Shown: in pieces, positions 4,568-35,075 of the stretch
Position numbering within the stretch: the stretch's first letter is position 1
How the letters are laid out: each line of letters starts with the position of its first letter
Source: Trichosphaerium sp. ATCC 40318
Taxonomy: Eukaryota > Protista > Tubulinea
Direction: 5' to 3'
NCBI GenBank assembly: GCA_038496445.1
Contig: JALMLS010000579.1
Coordinates: 186,001-250,000, forward strand
Length of the DNA: 64,000 nucleotides
The notes under the pieces: generated by a model
Databases searched by the model: none
Told to the model about the DNA's origin: nothing
The model's input: the letters and a program-made list of their open reading frames with translations, nothing else
Translations under genes and position numbers: made by a program

Positions 4568-6352
4568 ATGGCACTTTCCAACACAACGCATCTGCTCATT
4601 ATTATTGGGCTTCTTGTATGTTTTAATGCAACAAGCGCCAGTCTTCAATATGGCCAATCATGCAGTTGGGGATCTAATACATACACCCTATACTCTGGCA
4701 CTCTAGATGAAAATTGTGAAGAAGGTGCGCTGCTACCAACATTTTTGAAAAGATTTTCATCTCACTCATCGTTAGGCAATTCTCTTGTTATTGAAAGCCC
4801 TTTGGAGAGTGCCATGATAACCACTATAAGTGTAACGACTAATTAACGTTTATAAGAAGCGACTAAACGTGCTTTTCTAGGACTCTCTTCAATTAAACAT
4901 AGCGAGCACACTTGGAGGAGTCCTTTTGTGGGATAACAATAAGCCAGTATTACATTCGCTGTTGACTCAATGTGTTGCAGGCAATACCAAGTTATCAGGA
5001 CACCCAACGTTGATACAAGGCGTAAGAAGGCGGTACAAATAGCTTTTAACTAAACCAAATCTACAACAGGCAATTCATGACACAATGACACGTGCTTCAG
5101 ACTACATTTGTAAATCCTCTCGTACTAACGTCATTACGCCATGTATACCCTCAGCAGCTCCTTTCTTTTGCAACACTACTGACATTAACATGGCATCTGA
5201 CAGTGGTGCGTGATACTTATGCTGTTATTTAAACAAAAACCAATCCTATTTTGGGATCTGACATTTCTTGATTAACGAGTTGTAGGTAATTGTTACATTG
5301 TAATACCTGAACAAGATGTTCCATGGATGAAAGCGCAAGGTACATCAACATAACGAAATATTTATGATAACCTACAGGGCAGGAAATTGTATGAAACTTG
5401 GTGGGCACCTTGTCAATATCGATTCTGAAGATGAAAACGATATCATCGTTGGCCTTTCTAATAGTGCATCAGTGCCTTCTGTTTATTGGATTGGATTGTT
5501 TAGCGGCATGGGCGATCATTTAAATTATACATGGGTACGTACAAAGCAAAAGTAGTACTTAAAAGCCTTAGTAATAACATTGCTTAGTCGATAACTGGTG
5601 ACCGTCTTGACTATGGGAAAGTATTTCAGCAAGAACCATGGTCAAACAAAGAACCAGGAAATAGTTCTGTTGGAGCTATGACAGAAGACTGTGTCATATT
5701 GTATGTGGAATACTATAACGTTATCAGCTTACATTACTCAATACAGGTGGGGCGTACATTGGGCAGACTTCTATTGTTCCAATATTGGTCAGAACCTAAC
5801 AAGACCTCTGCGAGCTATTTGTGAGATTGTCATACCTCCTCCTTCACCGCCTAGTATGGCTCCTACTTTAACTCCTACAGAAGTACCATCAAGTGGTAAG
5901 TCACATGTTTATTTTTACAACATCCTAAAGTGTTGTCAATCAGGAAATTATGCTCCTGGTAACACCACTATTCAGCTTTATGGACCCTTTATTGTAACAG
6001 GTGCACAAGCCATTCAACGAGCATTATTTTTTCTCAAAAAGTTCTAAAAAAGGAAATGCAACGTTCAGTGACACAATACTTCAAATTAAAAACGAGTCTG
6101 TTCAAATCGAAGTTGAAGGATGTATTGATGGAAGTGTTGTTTGAGTTGAAATACCTTGAAGGGTGCACTCAAGTTTCACCAAAGATCAAGACAACACCTC
6201 AACAATGTGTTGTTTCAGAAGTGCTAAATCGCCAGAAAAAGTTTCAAGTATTCAGACTCACTACTCAGCGTTGCTCTATGGCGATCTCTCACTCAAGTAC
6301 CAAGTTTATTTATATTGTAATAGTGTTATTGTACTTGTTAACTGACTTATAA
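4568..6352 (+). CDS. Secreted C-type-lectin-domain surface protein, copy 1 (3' part frameshifted relative to copy 2)
   Basis: Signal peptide; CTLD motifs WMKAQGNCMKLGGHLVNIDSEDEN, YWIGL, WSNKEPGN..EDCV, WADFYC..RAICE; Pro/Thr linker. With copy-2 splicing it stops at TGA 6142-6144. The hydrophobic tail frame ends at 6352. Confidence 0.8.
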
Positions 6353-6632: not shown

Positions 6633-8499
6633 ATGTCGCATTCCAACACAACTCGTCTCCTTATTATTATTGCGCTTCTCCTCTGTATTTACATCATAAG
6701 CGCAGATTTACAATACGGTGAATCTTGTAGCTGGAAATCCAACACTTACACCCTACACTCTGGTACCCTGGACCAAAATTGTGCGAATGGTATGATGTAA
6801 CCAACATATTGTGCAAAAAAAATTGAGTTAACCCCTTAAATTGTTAGGCAACTCTCTTGTTATTGAAAGCCCTCTAGAGAGTGCTGTGATAACTACTATA
6901 AGCGTAATTACCACTGAGCATTTATAAGACGCGACTAAACGTGATTTTGTAGGACTCTCTTCAATTAAACATCAAAAACGAAGGAGGATTCCTTCTTTGG
7001 GATAATAATGATCCAGTAAAACTTTCACTGTTAACTATTAGTGTCGCAGACGATCAATTCATATCAGGCCACCCAACGTTAGTACAAGGCGTAAGGAGAC
7101 AGTACAACTAACATTTTATCTAAAACCAAAACTACAACAGGCAATTCATGACACAATGACACGTGCTTCAGACTATATTTGTAAATCCCCTCGTACTAAC
7201 GTCATTACGCCGTGTATACCCTCAGCAGCTCCTTTCTTTTGCAACACCACTGACATTAACATGGCATCTGACAATGGTACGTGATAGTAATAAGGACTTC
7301 TATTTGAAGAACCCAAAGCTGTTATGGACTTTTTTGGCCAGTACCGATTTGTTTGTAGGTGTTTGTTACATGGTTATACCTGAACAAAATATTACATGGA
7401 TGAAAGCACAAGGTGCATTAATAAAAATATATTTGTTTGTATTTGATTAACCTAAAGGGTAGGTAACTGTATGAAACTTGGTGGGCACCTTGTCAATATC
7501 GATTCTGAAGATGAAAACGATATCATCGTTGGCCTTTCTAACAACGCATCAGTGCCTTCCATATACTGGATTGGATTGTTTAGTGGCATGGGCGATCATT
7601 TAAATTATACATGGGTACGTACAAAGCAAAAGTAGTACTTAAAAGCCTTAGTAATAACATTGCTTAGTCGATAACTGGTGAGCGTCTTGACTATGGGAAA
7701 GTACTTCAACAAGACCCTTGGTCGTGGAAGGAACCGGGAAACAGTTCTATTGGAGGGATGACAGAAGATTGTATCGTGATGTACGGATATTAAACAATAA
7801 AAGCTCTAACATTTATAATAGGTGGGGCGTACATTGGGCAGATTTTTTCTGTTCTGATGCTAATCAGGTTGTGAGACCTCTTCGAGCCATTTGTGAGATT
7901 GTCATACCTCCTCCTTCACCGCCTAGTATGGCTCCTACTTTAACTCCTACAGAAGTACCATCAAGTGGTAAGTCACACGTTTATTTTTACAACATCCTAA
8001 AGTGTTGTCAATCAGGAAATTATGCTCCTGGTAACGCCACTATTCAGATTTTTGAAAACTTGATTGTAACAGGCACGCAAATAATTACACTGAGTGTTCA
8101 ACATAAAGTGGTCTAAAGTTCTTAAAAAGGAAATGCGACGTTCAGTGATACAATACTTCTACTTCGAACTGAGATTGTTCAAATCGAAGTTACAGGATGT
8201 ATTGATGGTTCTTTTGCAATTGACATCCGTAGCATACAGGTAATGTAAAGTGAAAACGCTGATATTTGATACTAATGCTGTCAAAGGAAGTGTTGTTTGA
8301 GCTGAAATACCTTGAAGGGTGCACTCAAGTTTCACCAAAGATCGAGACAACACCTCAACAATGTGTTGTTTCTGAAAGGGCAACCGCACAACAGTTTCAA
8401 CTTCTCAGACTCAAGACTCAAAGTTGTTCTACTGCATCTACGCACTCAAGTAGAATATTGTTATATTTCGCATTTGTGTTACTGTTGTCTTTTGTGTAA
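6633..8499 (+). CDS. Secreted C-type-lectin-domain surface protein, copy 2 (probably GPI-anchored)
   Basis: Tandem paralog about 2.08 kb downstream with the same exon structure. Intact C-terminus STASTHSSRILLYFAFVLLLSFV* resembles a GPI signal. Confidence 0.85.
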
Positions 8500-9158: not shown

Positions 9159-9353
9159 TGTTTAACCTACAACCGTTTCTTCTGTTAGAGTATCGAAAAA
9201 AAGAAATATTATAACTTAAGTACGGTAGAAATCTCAGTATTTTTCATACTATGGAAAAGCTTACCAAGTCTGACTAACCGACGCCTCAAACAAACTGATA
9301 ATAGGCGAAAATAATGAGAAAGTTTATTGTGCATAGCAAATGTTGTAGCGGCT

Positions 9354-9446
9354 ACATTTCGATCATAAAGCATCAGATAATTACAGCGAAAGGTATAAAC
9401 CTGTTGTTTCGTTATTGCAATAATCTTCATAAAATAAACGAAATGT
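9354..9446 (-). promoter_or_regulatory. SECIS element (selenocysteine insertion sequence)
   Basis: Minus strand: helix I ACATTTCG/CGAAATGT; core ATGAA (9430-9426) paired with TGAT (9375-9372); helix II GATTATTGCA/TGTAATTATC; apical AA plus minihelix CGAA/TTCG. Starts about 35 nt after the deiodinase stop. Confidence 0.85.
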
Positions 9447-9480
9447 CTCCGGCACTGTTAGTGCTTTAGGTAGAATAAAT

Positions 9481-10871
9481 TTACCCAACGAGCTTTTCTA
9501 TGAGCTCATCGATTTGTTCAGGCCATCCGTCGGTCTCTCCTTCATCACCAGACTGAGACTAGATTCAAAACAATAAGCTTTTGACAATAGATCCAACAAC
9601 ACACACAACGTACAATGTAAACGACTTTGCCTTTGTGAACAACATAGAATCGCTCAGGCCAAGGAGCGTAAGCACCTTCGAATGGGTTATGCATAGGGTC
9701 AACATAAAGAGGTATCTAAAGAACATTAGTCCAGGAGCCGAAAAACCTGCAAAAAACAAGCTTCAATCGTCAGGGTCCTGCTTACTCTGTATGTTCTCTC
9801 TTCCATCATTCTTTTTGCTGCAGCAATCCTATCATCTAAACTTTTATGTTGTGGGATATTGTAAACGGTTCCTAGTGGCCTAAGAGTTGTGTGAGGAACG
9901 TTGTTGACAGAAAGAAGCAATTTTTGCAGAGAAGAGAATAAGTAGGAGTTCTCACCATTGATCAGAAGCATGAGCTTCAATGACATACACCGTAACGAAG
10001 TTTGCCTTTGCCTTCCATTTATCATACAAGGCGTGGAGCTTGACAAACTCCGCCTCAAACGGTGGTCACGTGTACGAACCCGCAACTATAATCTACAGTT
10101 AACAACATACAAAAAAAAACCAGTGTTTAGAGCGTACGCAGGACTAGCGGCTTTTCAGACTTGAGAAATTGCACAAGGTGGAACTAAATATGGTTTAGAT
10201 GGTATTGGTATGAAAAGAAACCAAAGAGAAGAACAGAAAAGTTAAAACATTCGATATCGGTCTCAAATTCAATGAAAACAAATACGCACTGGTTCTTTGT
10301 CTAGCGTTAATATTTGAGGGAGTGGTGCAGGGTCACCGAGGCGTAGAGTGGTATCACGACTTATATCATACTTGATATAAAGAATAGCTTCCTTTAGAAA
10401 GAGTTTTAGTTGTTTTGTTACCTGACACTTCTTAGTCGTACACGCATTTCTTCGTCGCCTGGGAAGCGTGCTCTAGTACTTCTGTAGACATCTAAGGCGT
10501 CTTCGCTTGGTTCAAAGCCAAACTCCTAGTTCATCGGTTATATTGCATTACCTATGGTTTTTGTACCGTCAGCACTTGGCGTTGGATTGCCTAGGCTGTG
10601 TTAAGACAGAAGATTTTGACTAATAGACGTACGTCTTCAATGAGGGTGGTAGGTACAATAAACTGATAATAGTGTAAGCTGTCGTCCGTTTTGATTAAAT
10701 CTATGATCATACCTTTTTACGTTCAATATCGTACTTTTTTTGCGTCTTGTGGCTGTTAGAATGCGTGGGTATTACTTTAACGCGTACCTCATCCGAAAGC
10801 CGCAAGGCGTTCTCTCGTTTGAGCATCTTGACCAGAATTTCTCTGGTCATACGCTCCTCAAGCGTTGCCAT
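9481..10871 (-). CDS. Iodothyronine deiodinase-like selenoprotein (about 11 exons; Sec TGA at 10066-10068)
   Basis: Spliced product: ..LGDPAPLPQILTLDKEPFHLVQFLKSEKPLVLLAGSYT-U-PPF..ANFVTVYVIEAHASDQWPLG..IPQHKSLDDRIAAA..PLYVDPMHNPFEGAYAPWPERFYVV.. These are the deiodinase signature motifs. SECIS downstream. The start could lie further upstream. Confidence 0.92.
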
Positions 10872-11084
10872 CTCGTGCGCCTAGGAATACTTATTTTATG
10901 ACTTTCAACGAACTTAATTGCGTGTTACCGATAGAACGACAAAAAAACGAAATGTACGCTCAAAAGGCACATTCTCACTGAACTTTGGAGCTAGAGAGTA
11001 AAGGAAGTGATCTAATTTCTAAGTGACATTTGATAAAGTAACAAGTTTTATTTACATTTCTGGGAATTTGTTCGTGTTATCAAC

Positions 11085-11366
11085 TTATTCTGTAGCGTTG
11101 CCCCAAGTGTTTATAAAGTATTGCGCTTCCTCGAACGTGTTCATACGAGAAAGAACTGGTTTACGTTTCCTTTGCGTTGTTTTGTGGTTTGTACTTCTTG
11201 TCGTTGATTGATAGTTGGTATAAGGGCGTGCGTTGCTGTGATTAGCTCTCATGGCGCTGGCAGCTTTATTTCGTTCTGTGCGTGTAACTCTGCTTGGACC
11301 CATCTGATTAAACCAGGCTGCGTTTTCGCGGAGCATTCTCTCTTCTCTTTGGCCTCTTCTGTTCAT
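11085..11366 (-). CDS. Small basic orphan protein (93 aa, single exon)
   Basis: A-rich leader (CAAAACAAAATG), clean ORF and AATAAA about 35 nt after the stop. No recognisable domain. Confidence 0.5.
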   Translation of the reverse strand: MNRRGQREERMLRENAAWFNQMGPSRVTRTERNKAASAMRANHSNARPYTNYQSTTRSTNHKTTQRKRKPVLSRMNTFEEAQYFINTWGNATE

Positions 11367-11785
11367 TTTGTTTTGTTGCGTTTAGTGTTGTAGTGTTTGT
11401 AACTGATTGCTTGTTTACTTATTGTATGAGCTGCCACTTAACTGCGATTATTAATTGAATCTACAATAAAGTTGATAACTCCTATTTCGAAGAACTCTTG
11501 GTAGCGTTTCAATTACTAACAAAGAATGTGGAAGAGCCAGCGATTGCGAAAGCATTATGCTGAGTTGTAAGAGCCTTTTCATCGTACAGAACTAGCTTTT
11601 TTATGATGGTCGAGCATATACAAGAATCATTTGGGTAGAGAATAAAGTGAGAATGTCGCAGCGTGTTTCTTCAAAAACTCAAAACACTTCCCAACTACTT
11701 TAAAAGAACATAACACTCATGCTATAAGAGTACTATTACAAGTGGCTAAGATCAAAGTATTATATTTATTGTATTCTGGATTCTT

Positions 11786-13978
11786 TTACATGACTATCAA
11801 TGTTAATACTACAAAAAGAGTAAATGCCTAACCTACACAATATAAACCGAACAAATACATACCAGCAGAAACAAACAAGTATGTCACGTGTTGAAAACAA
11901 GCATTAGATGTAACTCCATCTTGAGTTGGAGAGATTGCCACAGCGGTGTTTAATGAAGCAGGAGGAAGTGCACTGGGCTCAGACTAAAGAAAGAAGAATA
12001 TCAGAAAACAGTGTTTAAGGCGGTAACGTACTATAACAGTTATGCCAGCATTTTGAACTTCTGTTGCTGTTGCGGCAAGTTTTTGCTCGTCATTCAAGTA
12101 AGAAGATACAATTTCAGCAACAGGTGTATTGTTATCAGAGGTATTGACAGTAACAATAACTTGAGTTTCAGATTGACGCTTTGACGAAACGGCAGGTTTT
12201 TGAGAGATTGTTCCATCTTCTTGGTTAAGACCCATACCGTTTAGCATTGCCTTACCAACGTCATCTACAACTTTTTGGGGAGCTGGATACGTTTGTGAGA
12301 TTGTAAGACCAACTTCAATGCCTAAAGAGGAACTGGAGTTAGAAACTATTGCCGGAGTTTGCTAAGAACAAAAAACAAACAAACTAGTCATACCTTCTTG
12401 TGGGCAGGTTGTTGCACTGTCACCGCCAACGAAAGTTACAATACCACCCTAAAATAAAGTAAGTACACACGTACTTATCACATGAAAGAACGTACACCGA
12501 GAGTCCAAGTTGTTGAAGATCCATCGAACACAAAAGCAAAGTTAATATTTGGATAATAAGTTGAAGTTCCGTTGAACGTAGTTGGTTGTTCTGGTGTTCC
12601 AGAAGGCGAAATATCGTTATCTTGACCGACAGGTACTGTAATAGAGCTTTCCTATAGAAACTATGTGTAAGCGAAGGTAGCCACATTACGTTAAGAAAAA
12701 AACTGTACTGGTGTAGTCCAACCAAGATATGCAGTATAGGTACCATCTCCATTGTCAGCAACACAGTCACTTCGGGGCATAATCTAAGAGAAAGTTAAAA
12801 TATGGAATTAGTAAGAATTGAAAACGTACATTAGGTAGAATTCTTGCTGTAGGAGCAACTGTTGGGGACAATGTTGTTGGTACATCGGCTACTGTAGGTT
12901 CTGTGGTGAGCGTTTGCGTAGGTACATTTGCTGGGGCTATTGTTGTAGGAGTAGCTGTTGGCGGAGCTGTCGTTGGAGGTGAGGTTGGAGCAGCAGTTGG
13001 AGGCTGTGTTGTTGGAGGAACTGTAGGCACTTGTGTTGTTGGCGGATTTGTTGGCGGAGCTGTCGTAGGTGGAGCTGTAGGCGCTTGTGTTGTTGGTGGA
13101 TCGGTTGTTGGAGGAGTAGTTGTTGGAGGCAGTGTTGTTGGAGGAGGCAAGACTTCTCTTTGGAAGGTGTAGCCTCGAGAAGTACCTTGTATTGTATTGC
13201 ACGGTTCTGTGAAGAACATATTGCATATTGTAGCTCCGTAGGTCGTATAGAACTTGCAACGTGGGTCTGCAAGGCAAGTAGCCCGACAATGGGTATTTGA
13301 AACGCCTTGCGCAGGAAATGTACAGCCACTAGGTTCGTTGTTACAGTTTAGAGTAGCTCCAGGCTTTAGTCCCCCCTGACCACCACAGCCAATGTATCTA
13401 CCCCCAAACCAGTCTCTATAACATCCAGAGCATGTGCTCTTTGAGTCTGAATACAGTGGTGTGAATGTTTCGAAAACTGGGGCTCTGGTTGGTGTTACTG
13501 TTGTAGGAGAAGCTGTTGTTGGAGGTCTTGTTGGAGCTTGTGTTGTTGGAGGAGGAGGAATAGTTCTTTTGTATGTGTTACCATCTATGTCACCTTTGAA
13601 AGGGGTACATACTGTCATGTAGAATAGATTACAAATTTGGCTTCCGTACGTTGTGTAGAACTTGCAACGCGAGTCAGCAAGGCAAGTAGCTTCACAATGG
13701 CTATTTGAAACACCTTGTGAAGGAAAACTACATCCGCTAGGTTCGTTGTTACAATTTAGAGTAGCATTAGGGTGTAGTCCTCCCTGACCGCCACAACCAA
13801 AGTAAGCACCAGCGCTCCAGTCTCGTCGACAACCAGTTGCGCATGTAAACCTTGAGTTTTGGAATAGCGGCAAAAATATTTCGACAAAAGGGGCTTGTGT
13901 TGTTTGAGCAGTCGATTCTATGATCAATATAGATACGACCAACAGTACAGATACTCCGATGAGTTTGTTCAGAAGCAT
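11786..13978 (-). CDS. Cell-surface mucin-like protein with two Cys-rich PAN/apple-like repeats
   Basis: Signal peptide MLLNKLIGVSVLLVVSILIIESTA; two ~100-aa repeats containing CxxxCLADxRCKFYTTYGxxICNxF; long PPTT stalks; hydrophobic C-terminus (GPI-like). Confidence 0.8.
12850..13150 (-). repeat. Pro/Thr-rich coding low-complexity repeat (PPTT units)
   Basis: Repeated GTTGTTGGAGG-type units on the plus strand. These explain the shadow V/G-rich and Q-rich ORFs. Confidence 0.9.
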
Positions 13979-14489
13979 GTTGTATGTTAATTGTTCGGAT
14001 ATTTGTTGGTTTGTTTTTAGGCTATTTTGAGAAAACTCACTTATTTTCCGTTTCAAAAAAAACTCTAAAGACATCCACTATGCTCAATGATTAGATTGAT
14101 ATTAATAGAGACGTTTGTAATTATGCATTAGAGCAAAGTAATGGAGTTTTCAAACTTTCGAATTTGGGTGTAAAAGTCGATAAATGCGTTCACTGAAAAT
14201 GGCAACAAGTTATGCTTTGTGTTGCCAATAAATAACTTCGGTGAAGGGCAATTGTGTTATGTTATTTATTGAAGAAAACAAGACATTCAACAGTCTGATT
14301 CTACTTTTCTTTTTGTTTTGTCCCAACTCGCAAATGAAGCCTACAATCGCTAACAATAGTGAAAGCATCTGACAGTTGTTAAGAAAAGAAGGAGGGATGT
14401 GGATTCGGAGATACGTGAGAAAAAGAGTGTTCCAGCACGGAGTTACTTACAATAGTTGTAAACTTGTCCTATGTTCATAAAAAGAATGC

Positions 14490-27753: not shown

Positions 27754-30700
27754 TTATTTCTGTGGATGAAATGACCAGTTTATTTCTGAACAACAAACTA
27801 CTCTATCATATTTTGTAATATTGCACGCGAGAAACAGCTTTGATGGCAACACAATAGCGATGCCTGGTTTCATAGATTGGTCATCAAAGACTATGAACCT
27901 TTTGTTTCATAGTTTTTTTAATTTTGACAACGCATAACAAAGGCAGGTTTGGGTTATTTAATTGTTGATTTTATTTACAATTCTGGTGGTAGTATCTCAA
28001 AGAATCTATCAATTATCTCTCCTTTTTCGTACTGTAAACCACAATTATTTGCCAATGAAAGGAGGGACCTACAAAAAAACACCCAACATTAACAACGTGG
28101 TTTTGTTTGACAGAAAAGAAAATTATTGCAAAAGAAGGAAAAAAAAAGAAAAAAAAGGCTTCTAGCTAGTTACTGGGTTGGTTTGTATAAAATACGTACT
28201 TCAAATAAGGTTTGCTCATTTCATTGTATTCTTTAAATAAGTACGAGAACATCTACATTAAAAATAAGCAATGAAAAAGAGAGTGAAACAGGGGAAGATA
28301 GAGAAAGCATATGATGAACAATTGTTTACATTTTTTTTTTGTTGAATGGTGCATACCTGAGTAAAAAAATCACCTTTCCTCATATATATCGCTATCTGGC
28401 ATAAATCAAAAAGCATGCACATTGCTATTGGTCCAAAACTCTTCATATATTCATTATCTTTCATAGCCTTAAAGCATTCCTGTGCAACCTATGTAACAAA
28501 GAGTTAAAAAAAAAAAGAGCCAAAAAGATGATATCACTTCTCAGTGTACCATGAAAGAATCGTCATATAGTCCTCCAGCATAATACACAAGCGACTTTAC
28601 AAGCATGACAGTAGTTCCCCATGTTTTGTAAAGTGAGAAATGTTCACCACTAAGTCTATGATTGATAAAAGTTTCTGCTCTATACAACGCATATTCGTAA
28701 TGTACAAAGTCCTGTTGGCTCTTTTAAAAAAAAAATAAAGTTAGCAATCATCAATGACAACTAAAATACAAAAACAAAAGAGTAAATCTATACATGGCTG
28801 GTATTGCGTCACTCCTTTAAAAATCCATCAAGAAAAAAAAAAGGAAAATAAAAAGAAGCGCATTTCCAGTCGAAAGACATATCAGGAAAAGAAGCTTGGT
28901 GACAAGACTAAAAAGAAAATACGGCGTACTATAGCTTGAATAGTATAAGAAGGTAGTATTGTATACTGAAAAAAGAGTTGAGGTGATACTGTTGATATTG
29001 AAAGCCACATCTAATCACAACATCAACAAGAGAAAAAAAACCCAACATTACCTTGACAAGAACACACCATAACGCTATCAAAGAAAAATGAAGAGGCATT
29101 GGTGTATTTTGTGGTTGTAGAATATAAGGATCAGTTTCAGCACCTACATTCCGTATCACTACAAGTTGTGCCTGCCTAAACAAGAATTAAAAATAAGTTG
29201 CGCTGTGCAGCCAAAAAAAAACCAATTTTTACTTCTGAAGGGTTGACGGTTGACGGTTTCACGTGCCTATCCAAGAAGAAATTCGCTGAGAATAGTTCTA
29301 TTCTTCTTGTCATACTTGTGATATATCCATGTTTAGATAATGATTGGCAAGTGTTAAAGTACGGGTCTCGTTTGAGTTTTCCAACCATACCTGGTTTGTA
29401 ATAAAAAATTAGTTCTCCTACAGCAAGAACTCAAGTTGACCCGGAATATAAAAAAAAGAAGATTTTAACATTTTATCACTACTCATCCTAAACCCTCCTT
29501 TTCATGGGCGTTATTCGAACGGTTACTAGCATAAATGACTATTTATTGCTTGCTAAAAAAATAATGCATGGCATGCAGTGAAATAAACAAAACGAGCAAA
29601 AAGTCGTTAATATTTTTTAATTGATAGTCCGGGTCAACTCCCCACCACAACAACGTACCTAAACCTAAGCTATATTTATGCTTGAATGCTTCTAAATCTC
29701 CTATCAGAGCATCATAATCCCCAATCAATATCAATCCAGCTAACCGAGCAACAAAAGTAAACAAAAAAAAAACGAACAAAAAAAAAGAAAAAAAAAGAAA
29801 AAGACTTCGTTATTGTACAGGCTGTCGCTGGATGATAACGGCTGTCTTCACACATTCTAACCGCGGCTGTATGTAAACATCGAGCTTGTTTTTCATAACC
29901 GCTCATTAGCGCGCCAAGGGCTAAGATACCAAGTAGCTCAAGAGAGCATGGTTGTGAAGCCCACGCTGCAGGCAGAAAGGTAAGGGAATTGGGTACAAAA
30001 ATAGACTTTTTTGGTTAAATACAGTACCAGTGTAGTCGGAGAAGGATTCTACAACGGTAGTACCATTCCAGTGCCTTAATGGTACGAGCTCGTAGAAAAT
30101 TAGTTACGACCAAGAATGGGCTTTTTTGCTGCTCTAAGAATGCTTCTAATTCACCGTACATAGTTTTGGTACAGTGTACTGCCATACGTTTGTAACCATC
30201 TCGAAACATCTGAAACATTTGCAAGCTGTGCTGATAATGACCACGCTGTAATCTTTGTAGACGTTAGCGTAAAAAGGGAACAAAAATAGGCTCTCTACAA
30301 TATTTTTTTTCAGCGAGTAGCCAGAAAAAATGTAAAAAAAACCCGTTACTGTATCTTGTTGAGAATGAACGTACCTCCAGTTTTTCGGCGTCGTACACTT
30401 CACCTGCCTCTTCTTCTTTGCTGTTAGCTTGTTGTTGTTCTTGTTCTTTTTGTTTAGTTTGAAAGAATTTCTCTCGCCAATACTCTGCTTCTAGTTCCTT
30501 TTCCGCCAAAGCTGCTTTAAGCGCTTTGTCTGTGAGCTTCGCTACATTTTTTCTCGTCAAAAAAGTATCAAACGATACCGAAGCGACGTACAAGTAGTTT
30601 CAGTTGAATTTATACTTGAATAGGTGCAAACTAGTCCTTTAGAAATACATGTTTCGCATTGAGGTCCGCCAGTGCATCGTACGTGTTTCTTACGGCAGTA

Positions 30701-33798: not shown

Positions 33799-35075
33799 GA
33801 TGTATTACTCAGATGTTATTTTTACAGTTATGGTTTCTTAGTGAACCTGGAGCGTCGGAGGAACTAATTATACCGAAAAATACTTTTAAAAAGTTTCTCT
33901 AACATCACTCTGCCATACGCTTGTTCGTGAATACTGTTGTGTCTGGTAGAAGTTAGTTATTATCAACAAGAGTATCACATTCTGCTTGGATCGATACCAT
34001 TGAAGCGTTGAACTGGTTTGTATATAGTATTCGACTCTACAAAAGGTTGTTGCTTTTATAATACTACCAATGTTCTTGCGACTGAGCATTTTGTTTCTCA
34101 AGAATCGGAGGAACTAATTATACCGCAAAAGGTAAAAAAATGTTGTGTCAACCACTGTATCGTATTCTAGGCTCAACTTAGTTTCATTCGAAACAAATAC
34201 CCTTTGTAGTCACGCGCCTTGTGAATTTAGGTACATCTAAAACTCCAAGGGGTGAAACGGCTAGCACGCCCTAATGATTTCAAAATCAGCTGAAAATGAT
34301 GACGTTTCACAACAATCACGTTTTGGTTTTTTCGGGCAATGGAAGTGATTTTCAACTTTTAAAAGTTATCTATATGCAAACACTATAACCTACATATTAT
34401 CTGTTTTAGCTAAATAGAATGCGAAGTGGAATGAATTGGGCCGGAATAAATCGTTTCAAACAACAACAAAGTCTGAATTTTAGTTTAAAGACTCACATGA
34501 AATTTGCGTGAAGGTGACCTAAAGTCGTTAACAAAACATCTGAAAGGATAAGAACCAAAAGGAATTGTTCTCCAGGATGAAAGAACTATATAGTTTACGG
34601 ATTCGTTGGCTTGATTGAGCACTTCTTTGAACTAGATACGCTAGAATAGAAAAGCCAAAGATATCTTCACGTGGTGTGCAGAAGGGGGATTTGTGGATTA
34701 AAGAAAGTGAGGTCTAGAGGGAAGTTCCACACAAAGAAACTCGTAGCATTCACAAAACAACTGACAAGTTAAGCGATTGAAGCAACGTGCAGCCTATCTT
34801 AGCAAAGTCAATACATCTGTGCTACTCCCTTCACAGCAATATCATACGCTCAACTAGCATTCATACTTGCAAGACTTATGTACTGTAACGCTATTATCCG
34901 TCAATCAAGTGAGTATTTAAACAGTGACATCCAAATGCACTGGTAAGAAAACTGATAGATAGTAGGTCGCCTGGTTACATACCAAATAAGATCATCATCA
35001 ATTTACTCGCAGCATGGGTTGTAGTCCATATCTGATATATATTCTCAAACAAACTCGTTAAAAGCTCAGGTGCTA

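Follow-up and report, generated by a model that had tools for sequence, protein, structure and literature searches.

The systems closest to the gene described here are the vertebrate iodothyronine deiodinases Dio1-3, of which mouse Dio3 (4TR3 and 4TR4) and mouse Dio2 (9H48) have solved structures. These enzymes match the Pfam family T4_deiodinase and carry selenocysteine (Sec) in the motif S-x-T-U-P-P-F, where it is inserted at a UGA codon in a SECIS-dependent manner. They also possess the Tyr, Glu, and His of a YxxEAH motif, a Trp, the His of IPQH, a family loop, and the Glu of (F/P)ER. All of these features are shared by the gene. However, the gene lacks the N-terminal transmembrane anchor of Dio1-3 and has in its place a charged N-terminal extension of about 100 residues. 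It also has Tyr for Cys168, Ile for Cys239, and SGDEGETDGW where the vertebrate C-terminus has GGxGPxGY, and an equivalent of Arg275/Lys241 was not found.

In 2007, Dictyostelium discoideum was reported to have a deiodinase homologue that contains Sec and carries a type II SECIS element, which was termed unexpected at that time (PMC2375036). This homologue (DI, didA, dio3) resembles the gene in coming from an amoeboid protist, in containing Sec, and in having a type II SECIS element with unpaired A's (PMC2375036). This likeness is drawn from published descriptions. The Dictyostelium gene is single copy within a five-member selenoproteome whereas about 12 family loci are present here. Knockout of didA leaves DIF dechlorinase activity, the sole dehalogenase activity assayed there, unaffected, so the homologue is not responsible for that activity (PMC3205185). 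A developmental role has been ascribed to it (Singh et al. 2014, as cited in PMC6592521). Deiodinase gene families are found in marine invertebrates, with 11 genes in Trichoplax, 12 in Capitella, and 9 in amphioxus (PMC3473315). In algae, DIO is one of the selenoprotein families, and Sec is present in about 80% of the DIO members (PMC7539508). Like the family described below, the invertebrate (PMC3473315) and algal (PMC7539508) families are multi-copy, mostly Sec-containing, and found in aquatic organisms that lack a thyroid. Unlike them, the present family belongs to another lineage and includes a subfamily with its own conserved soluble N-terminal extension.

The gene is located on the minus strand of the window, that is, the whole stretch of 64,000 nucleotides of Trichosphaerium sp. 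DNA that was analysed. With high probability, it is an intact nuclear gene of nine exons whose product, soluble and about 247 residues long, belongs to the iodothyronine deiodinase family (thioredoxin fold) and would have Sec decoded from the UGA at codon 120. Judged from its sequence, the gene is a real selenoprotein gene and a new member of the deiodinase family. The original prediction of a deiodinase-homologous selenoprotein is supported by homology on both sides of the TGA, by the placement of the TGA at the catalytic Sec position, by a SECIS element after the stop codon, and by the presence of Sec machinery in the genome.

Structure of the gene

Nine frame-consistent exons bounded by GT..AG extend from 10871 to 9484 on the minus strand and comprise 741 nt (247 codons), followed by a TAA stop at 9483-9481. 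The sole internal in-frame stop codon of this reading is the TGA at 10068-10066 (codon 120). The introns are 41-197 nt in length, and several use a GTACG donor that is also used by introns of the paralogues (loci L029-L039, described below).

10788-10871, minus strand: exon 1, ATG at 10871-10869, 28 codons (MATLEERMTREILVKMLKRENALRLSDE), donor GTACGC
10567-10590, minus strand: exon 2, 8 codons (AIQRQVLT), homologous to KIQLKVLK, which lies directly 5' of EFGF in paralogue L030
10442-10525, minus strand: exon 3, 28 codons (EFGFEPSEDALDVYRSTRARFPGDEEMR), donor GTACGA
10290-10391, minus strand: exon 4, 34 codons (EAILYIKYDISRDTTLRLGDPAPLPQILTLDKEP), donor GTGCGT
10138-10183, minus strand: exon 5, 46 nt, FHLVQFLKSEKPLVL and the first base of a Leu codon
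9956-10085, minus strand: exon 6, 130 nt, active site (L)AGSYT-U-PPF...EAHASDQ(W), containing the TGA
10066-10068, minus strand: UGA codon 120, read as Sec; TGA at the same position in 8/8 readable paralogues
9786-9879, minus strand: exon 7, 94 nt, (W)PLGTVYNIPQHKSLDDRIAAAKRMMEERTYR
9614-9715, minus strand: exon 8, 102 nt, IPLYVDPMHNPFEGAYAPWPERFYVVHKGKVVYI, with Pfam and Dio3 matches
9481-9558, minus strand: exon 9, 75 nt (SQSGDEGETDGWPEQIDELIEKLVG), then the TAA stop at 9483-9481

The TGA was predicted to lie within LLAGSYT-U-PPF, and it is present there, the minus strand reading ...AGSYT*PPFEAEFVKLHALYDKWKAKANFVTVYVIEAHASDQW. The string LLAGSYT is formed only by splicing, its second Leu codon being split C|TT between exon 5 (end 10138) and exon 6 (start 10085). 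The strings quoted as homology beyond the TGA were all found as well: HKSLDDRIAAA in exon 7, PERFYVV in exon 8, and VYVIEAHASDQW, whose W codon is interrupted by an intron (TG|G). As had been claimed, the gene is missed by the mechanical list of open reading frames, which holds fragments of it. Ordinary annotation pipelines would likely truncate a gene of this kind, and an exact gene model is now on hand for annotators of the locus. All searches, alignments, and folds were run exon by exon.

Several junctions are supported by the paralogues. The helix KMLK..E..LR.S.E of exon 1 is common to them. Paralogue homology of exon 3 ends precisely at residue 28, and the junction with exon 4 (..EEMR|EAILYIKYD) corresponds to ..NDVK|EAALYIKYD and ..DDVR|EASIYIKYD. 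An end of exon 3 at 10427 was considered and was replaced by 10442 (donor GTACG) on the basis of this homology. Exon 4 shows 42-48% identity with paralogue exons and has its GTGCG donor in common with L039, and the exon 6/7 junction DQW|PLG reads as an uninterrupted DEWPLG in the paralogues. Exon 9 has the G(W/Y)..E(Q/H)IDxL of the paralogue last exons, and its acceptor is uncertain since an alternative at 9553|9552 would remove the first two residues (SQ). Inclusion of exon 2 is also uncertain because its length is a multiple of three, which leaves homology to argue for it.

An in-frame TAG is found four codons upstream of the exon 1 ATG. Since a TAG just 5' of the ATG could act as an acceptor, a further 5' exon is possible. 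The stop-free segments of the upstream region (10872-12770) gave no convincing Pfam match. The paralogue N-termini (MF..SGK.GFDL) directly follow stop codons, and an upstream F-box or ubiquitin-like exon was therefore rejected for the soluble subfamily.

Deiodinase family membership and active site

Exon pieces 6b, 7, and 8 match Pfam T4_deiodinase (PF00837) collinearly at profile positions 115-151, 157-178, and 184-215 of 237, with scores of 26.3, 18.7, and 19.8 bits (E = 5.5e-6, 1.2e-3, and 5.4e-4, respectively). In the whole-genome scan, the read-through stretch across the TGA (9952-10143) scored 31 bits at profile positions 88-152 (the curated cut-off for the family is 27 bits). When exon 6b, which begins right after the TGA, was compared with all solved structures, the only matches were mouse Dio3 (4tr3) and mouse Dio2 (9h48). 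Both alignments are gapless from the residue right after the Sec of these enzymes and have PPF at their start. Dio3 is also the best match of exon 8 among solved structures.

At the start of helix 1, the gene has AGSYT-TGA-PPF for the active-site motif S-x-T-U-P-P-F. The residues of the deiodinase proton relay (as listed in PMC11592359) are kept: the gapless alignment places equivalents of Dio2 Ser127, Thr129, Tyr157, Glu160, His162, and His182, together with Trp167, at Ser-3, Thr-1, Tyr, Glu, the His of EAH, the His of IPQH, and Trp of the gene. Loop D, an insertion specific to the family that separates EAHxSDxW from IPQH, is present as well (EAHASDQW-PLGTVYN-IPQH), having 7 residues versus 8 in Dio3.

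Other residues of the vertebrate enzymes are replaced. There is no basic residue at the position of the clamp formed by Dio3 Arg275 or Dio2 Lys241 in the last-exon alignment, which is loose. The position of the resolving Cys239 is occupied by Ile and that of Cys168 by Tyr. Exons 1-4 encode a charged sequence that contains no hydrophobic stretch; the vertebrate N-terminal membrane anchor is therefore absent. Vertebrate-type thyronine deiodination is unlikely because equivalents of Arg275 and Cys239 are not conserved and the anchor is missing. Likewise, the substrate is unlikely to be a thyronine bound as in the vertebrate enzymes.

Proposed mechanism and chemistry

Decoding of the UGA would follow the standard eukaryotic route, in which the type II SECIS element, located in the 3'UTR some 430 nt further along the mRNA, would recruit the Sec-specific elongation factor carrying Sec-tRNA(UCA). 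In the protein, the Sec selenolate would attack a halogen on an aromatic ring while the Ser/Thr/Tyr/Glu/His/His relay would protonate the ring carbon. The selenenyl halide product would then be reduced by thiols. The gene product presumably works like a deiodinase, and dehalogenation is, on balance, the more likely chemistry. The original prediction of a dehalogenase or redox enzyme is retained here as a putative activity. The sequence keeps the proton relay but has neither the thyronine-clamp Arg nor a membrane anchor.

The same selenoprotein could have another chemistry, that of a selenol oxidoreductase of the peroxiredoxin or thioredoxin type that reduces peroxides or disulfides or senses redox state, which is conceivable but rather unlikely. 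The deiodinase fold is itself peroxiredoxin-like, and the absence of equivalents of the Arg275 clamp and Cys239 would suit such an enzyme. To our knowledge, a thyroid hormone system is not to be expected in this protist, which also points in that direction. The normal DIF dechlorinase activity of the Dictyostelium didA null mutant is consistent with it too (PMC3205185). However, the gene keeps in full the proton relay specific to deiodinases and the loop that runs from EAH..W to IPQH, and generic peroxiredoxins have neither. Dehalogenation by a deiodinase-like selenolate is the preferred reading.

The SECIS element and 3'UTR

The hairpin that had been predicted downstream of the stop codon folds as claimed.

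9354-9446, minus strand: type II SECIS element in the 3'UTR (core 9438-9362), AUGA at 9430-9427, GA at 9374-9373
9322-9327, minus strand: AATAAA, about 30 nt past the SECIS element, a candidate polyadenylation signal read from the sequence

The folding energy of 9446-9354 is -31.3 kcal/mol (z = -3.96), and none of 200 shuffled sequences folds as well. Helix I has 12 bp and leads to an internal loop in which AUGA (9430-9427) lies opposite UGAU (GA at 9374-9373). Helix II has 11 positions with one U-U mismatch, and the apex consists of an unpaired AUAA bulge and then a mini-stem, which makes the element type II. All of the canonical features (AUGA quartet, helix II, unpaired AA, GA, and helix I) are thus found. 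The element begins 43 nt past the TAA stop and lies, in the mRNA, about 430 nt beyond the UGA.

A rule-based scanner run over all 64 kb of the window gave a single element of this quality, namely the one at 9446-9354. First-order Markov simulations gave a chance rate of 0.3 per 128 kb for this quality level, and the chance of one lying at most 300 nt behind the stop on the same strand is therefore <1e-3. Rfam SECIS_1 aligned to the element at all 64 model positions with 19.5 bits, which is under the gathering score of 35. A covariance model built from four paralogue SECIS elements did not recover the element of this gene; the same model recovered further elements in L034, L035, and, weakly, L039. 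The miss says nothing about the element of this gene because the model is dominated by subfamily sequence. An Rfam search of the pooled paralogue loci gave no SECIS match, the filters being stricter on larger input.

At a loose setting, the scanner also marked SECIS-like hairpins at 34431-34491 and 28055-28110 on the plus strand and at 44013-43947 on the minus strand. These are probably chance occurrences since they have no Rfam support (20 kb search).

Paralogues and the in-frame UGA

A search of the genome with the PF00837 profile revealed about 12 deiodinase-family loci.

Contigs C1, C3, C4, C16, C26, C35, C44, C54 (two loci), C176, and C490: deiodinase paralogue loci L029-L039

TGA is found at the Sec position in 9/9 readable sites (this gene and eight paralogues). 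The active-site motif of the eight readable paralogues is G-[SN]-[YH]-T-U-P-P, which is uninterrupted as G-S-Y-T-U-P-P in L033, L034, and L036. The eight paralogues are only 35-50% identical to this gene over aligned exons; therefore, the UGA has been retained through long divergence. SECIS-like elements directly follow the stop codons in several paralogues, and intron positions near the active site vary among the copies.

The family splits into two groups, one animal-like (FG[SN]YTUPPW ... YKGGEGPFGY) and one soluble. The soluble group consists of this gene and L029, L030, L033, L038, and L039, which have in common the N-terminal extension MF..SGK.GFDL...KMLK.E..R.S.E...EFGF.

These observations bear on whether the TGA is read at all. 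It could be a plain stop codon, owing to a pseudogene, an assembly error, or a product that ends at residue 119, and the score of the SECIS element under the Rfam threshold could be taken as a sign of this. Such an explanation is nevertheless very improbable given 127 codons of homology past the TGA with no further stop, the same TGA in eight diverged paralogues, and a SECIS element that is properly placed on the correct strand.

It is more improbable still that the exon model is wrong near the TGA, such that the codon is spliced out of the mRNA or another frame is used. The junctions were deduced from the sequence and the paralogues only, the introns have a very short length of 41-197 nt, and there is uncertainty about exon 2 and the acceptor of exon 9. 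The TGA, however, lies 17 nt into exon 6, in a motif that L033, L034, and L036 contain without interruption, and the Pfam match crosses it.

Apart from these questions, L030, L034, and L036 have both an internal TGA at the Sec position and a TGA stop, which amounts to dual use of UGA in one mRNA. L035 (C54:224000-229000, minus strand, about 2335-2800) resembles a 5'-decayed or truncated duplicate of L034 (the copy at C54:69k). It keeps the last exons and a SECIS element (36 bits with the paralogue-trained model R1), and no readable upstream active-site exon was found.

Selenocysteine machinery in the genome

The original prediction implied that the organism has Sec machinery, and tRNA-Sec, SepSecS, SelD/SPS, and eEFSec were all found in the 70 Mb assembly.

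Contig C5, 742868-742954: tRNA-Sec (Infernal with Rfam RF01852, 61.7 bits, cut-off 47), anticodon UCA, loop CUUCAAA
Contig C99: SepSecS, five collinear exons
Contig C102: SelD/SPS, three exons, selD being the top NCBIfam family for the pieces
Contig C36: eEFSec fourth domain, 79 bits

ARAGORN found nothing at the tRNA-Sec locus, where Infernal with RF01852 does find tRNA-Sec. A search of the genome for PSTK with TIGR03575 gave no match, and a KTI12-family search for the same enzyme gave one ambiguous locus.

L030, L034, L035, and L036 have an ordinary TGA stop at the normal C-terminus of the family. Because these four paralogues terminate at TGA, the codon has not been reassigned and is still a stop. 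Reassignment or misreading of UGA as Cys or Trp, which would make the protein selenium-free, is a formal possibility with nothing specific in its favour and is the least credible explanation, set against these four stops and the tRNA-Sec, SepSecS, SelD, and eEFSec of the genome.

Deiodinase homologues outside thyroid signalling

Since such genes are known in amoebae, algae, and invertebrates, the find is correct but fairly ordinary, and the gene alone reveals no new mechanism. It does provide, for a marine protist, a Sec-containing deiodinase homologue with a secure gene model, as one of about a dozen family members with UGA-Sec at all readable sites. The gene supports the views that large selenoproteomes accompany aquatic life and that the deiodinase fold is older than thyroid signalling. 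Its soluble, anchor-free form would make it a convenient protein for expression and for assays on the substrates of non-animal deiodinases.

The members of the soluble subfamily (at least six loci) have the N-terminal extension. They are not anchored in the membrane and have neither the clamp for thyronines nor a resolving Cys. It is a doubtful proposal that they form a protist-specific, Sec-dependent branch of the deiodinase fold, perhaps acting on non-thyronine substrates, whose expansion marks halogen handling. If this were true, the substrates could be halotyrosines or bromophenols from marine prey, or halogenated or oxidised protein residues, and the roughly 12-fold expansion would mark a halogen-handling physiology so far undescribed in amoebae.

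Other observations in the window and genome

The F-box family is very large genome-wide, with 1,809 (PF12937) and 1,398 (PF00646) first-look candidates, and the 150 that were scored were all significant. These searches saturate at 150 scored out of over 1,300 candidates and are uninformative on fusion of an F-box to the deiodinase genes.

Two ORF segments on the plus strand of the window (5691-6047 and 7718-8116) share an almost identical run of about 75 residues (RWGVHWADF...PLRAICEIVIPPPSPPSMAPTLTPTEVPSSGKSHVYFYNILKCCQSGNYAPGN), which points to a gene or exon duplicated locally in tandem. On the minus strand, a 435-aa open frame at 12767-14074 encodes two Cys-rich modules (..CNNEPSGC.FP.QGVSN.HC.ATCLAD.RCKFYTTYG..) with Pro/Thr-rich, mucin-like linkers between and after them. 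Its product is probably a secreted or surface protein.
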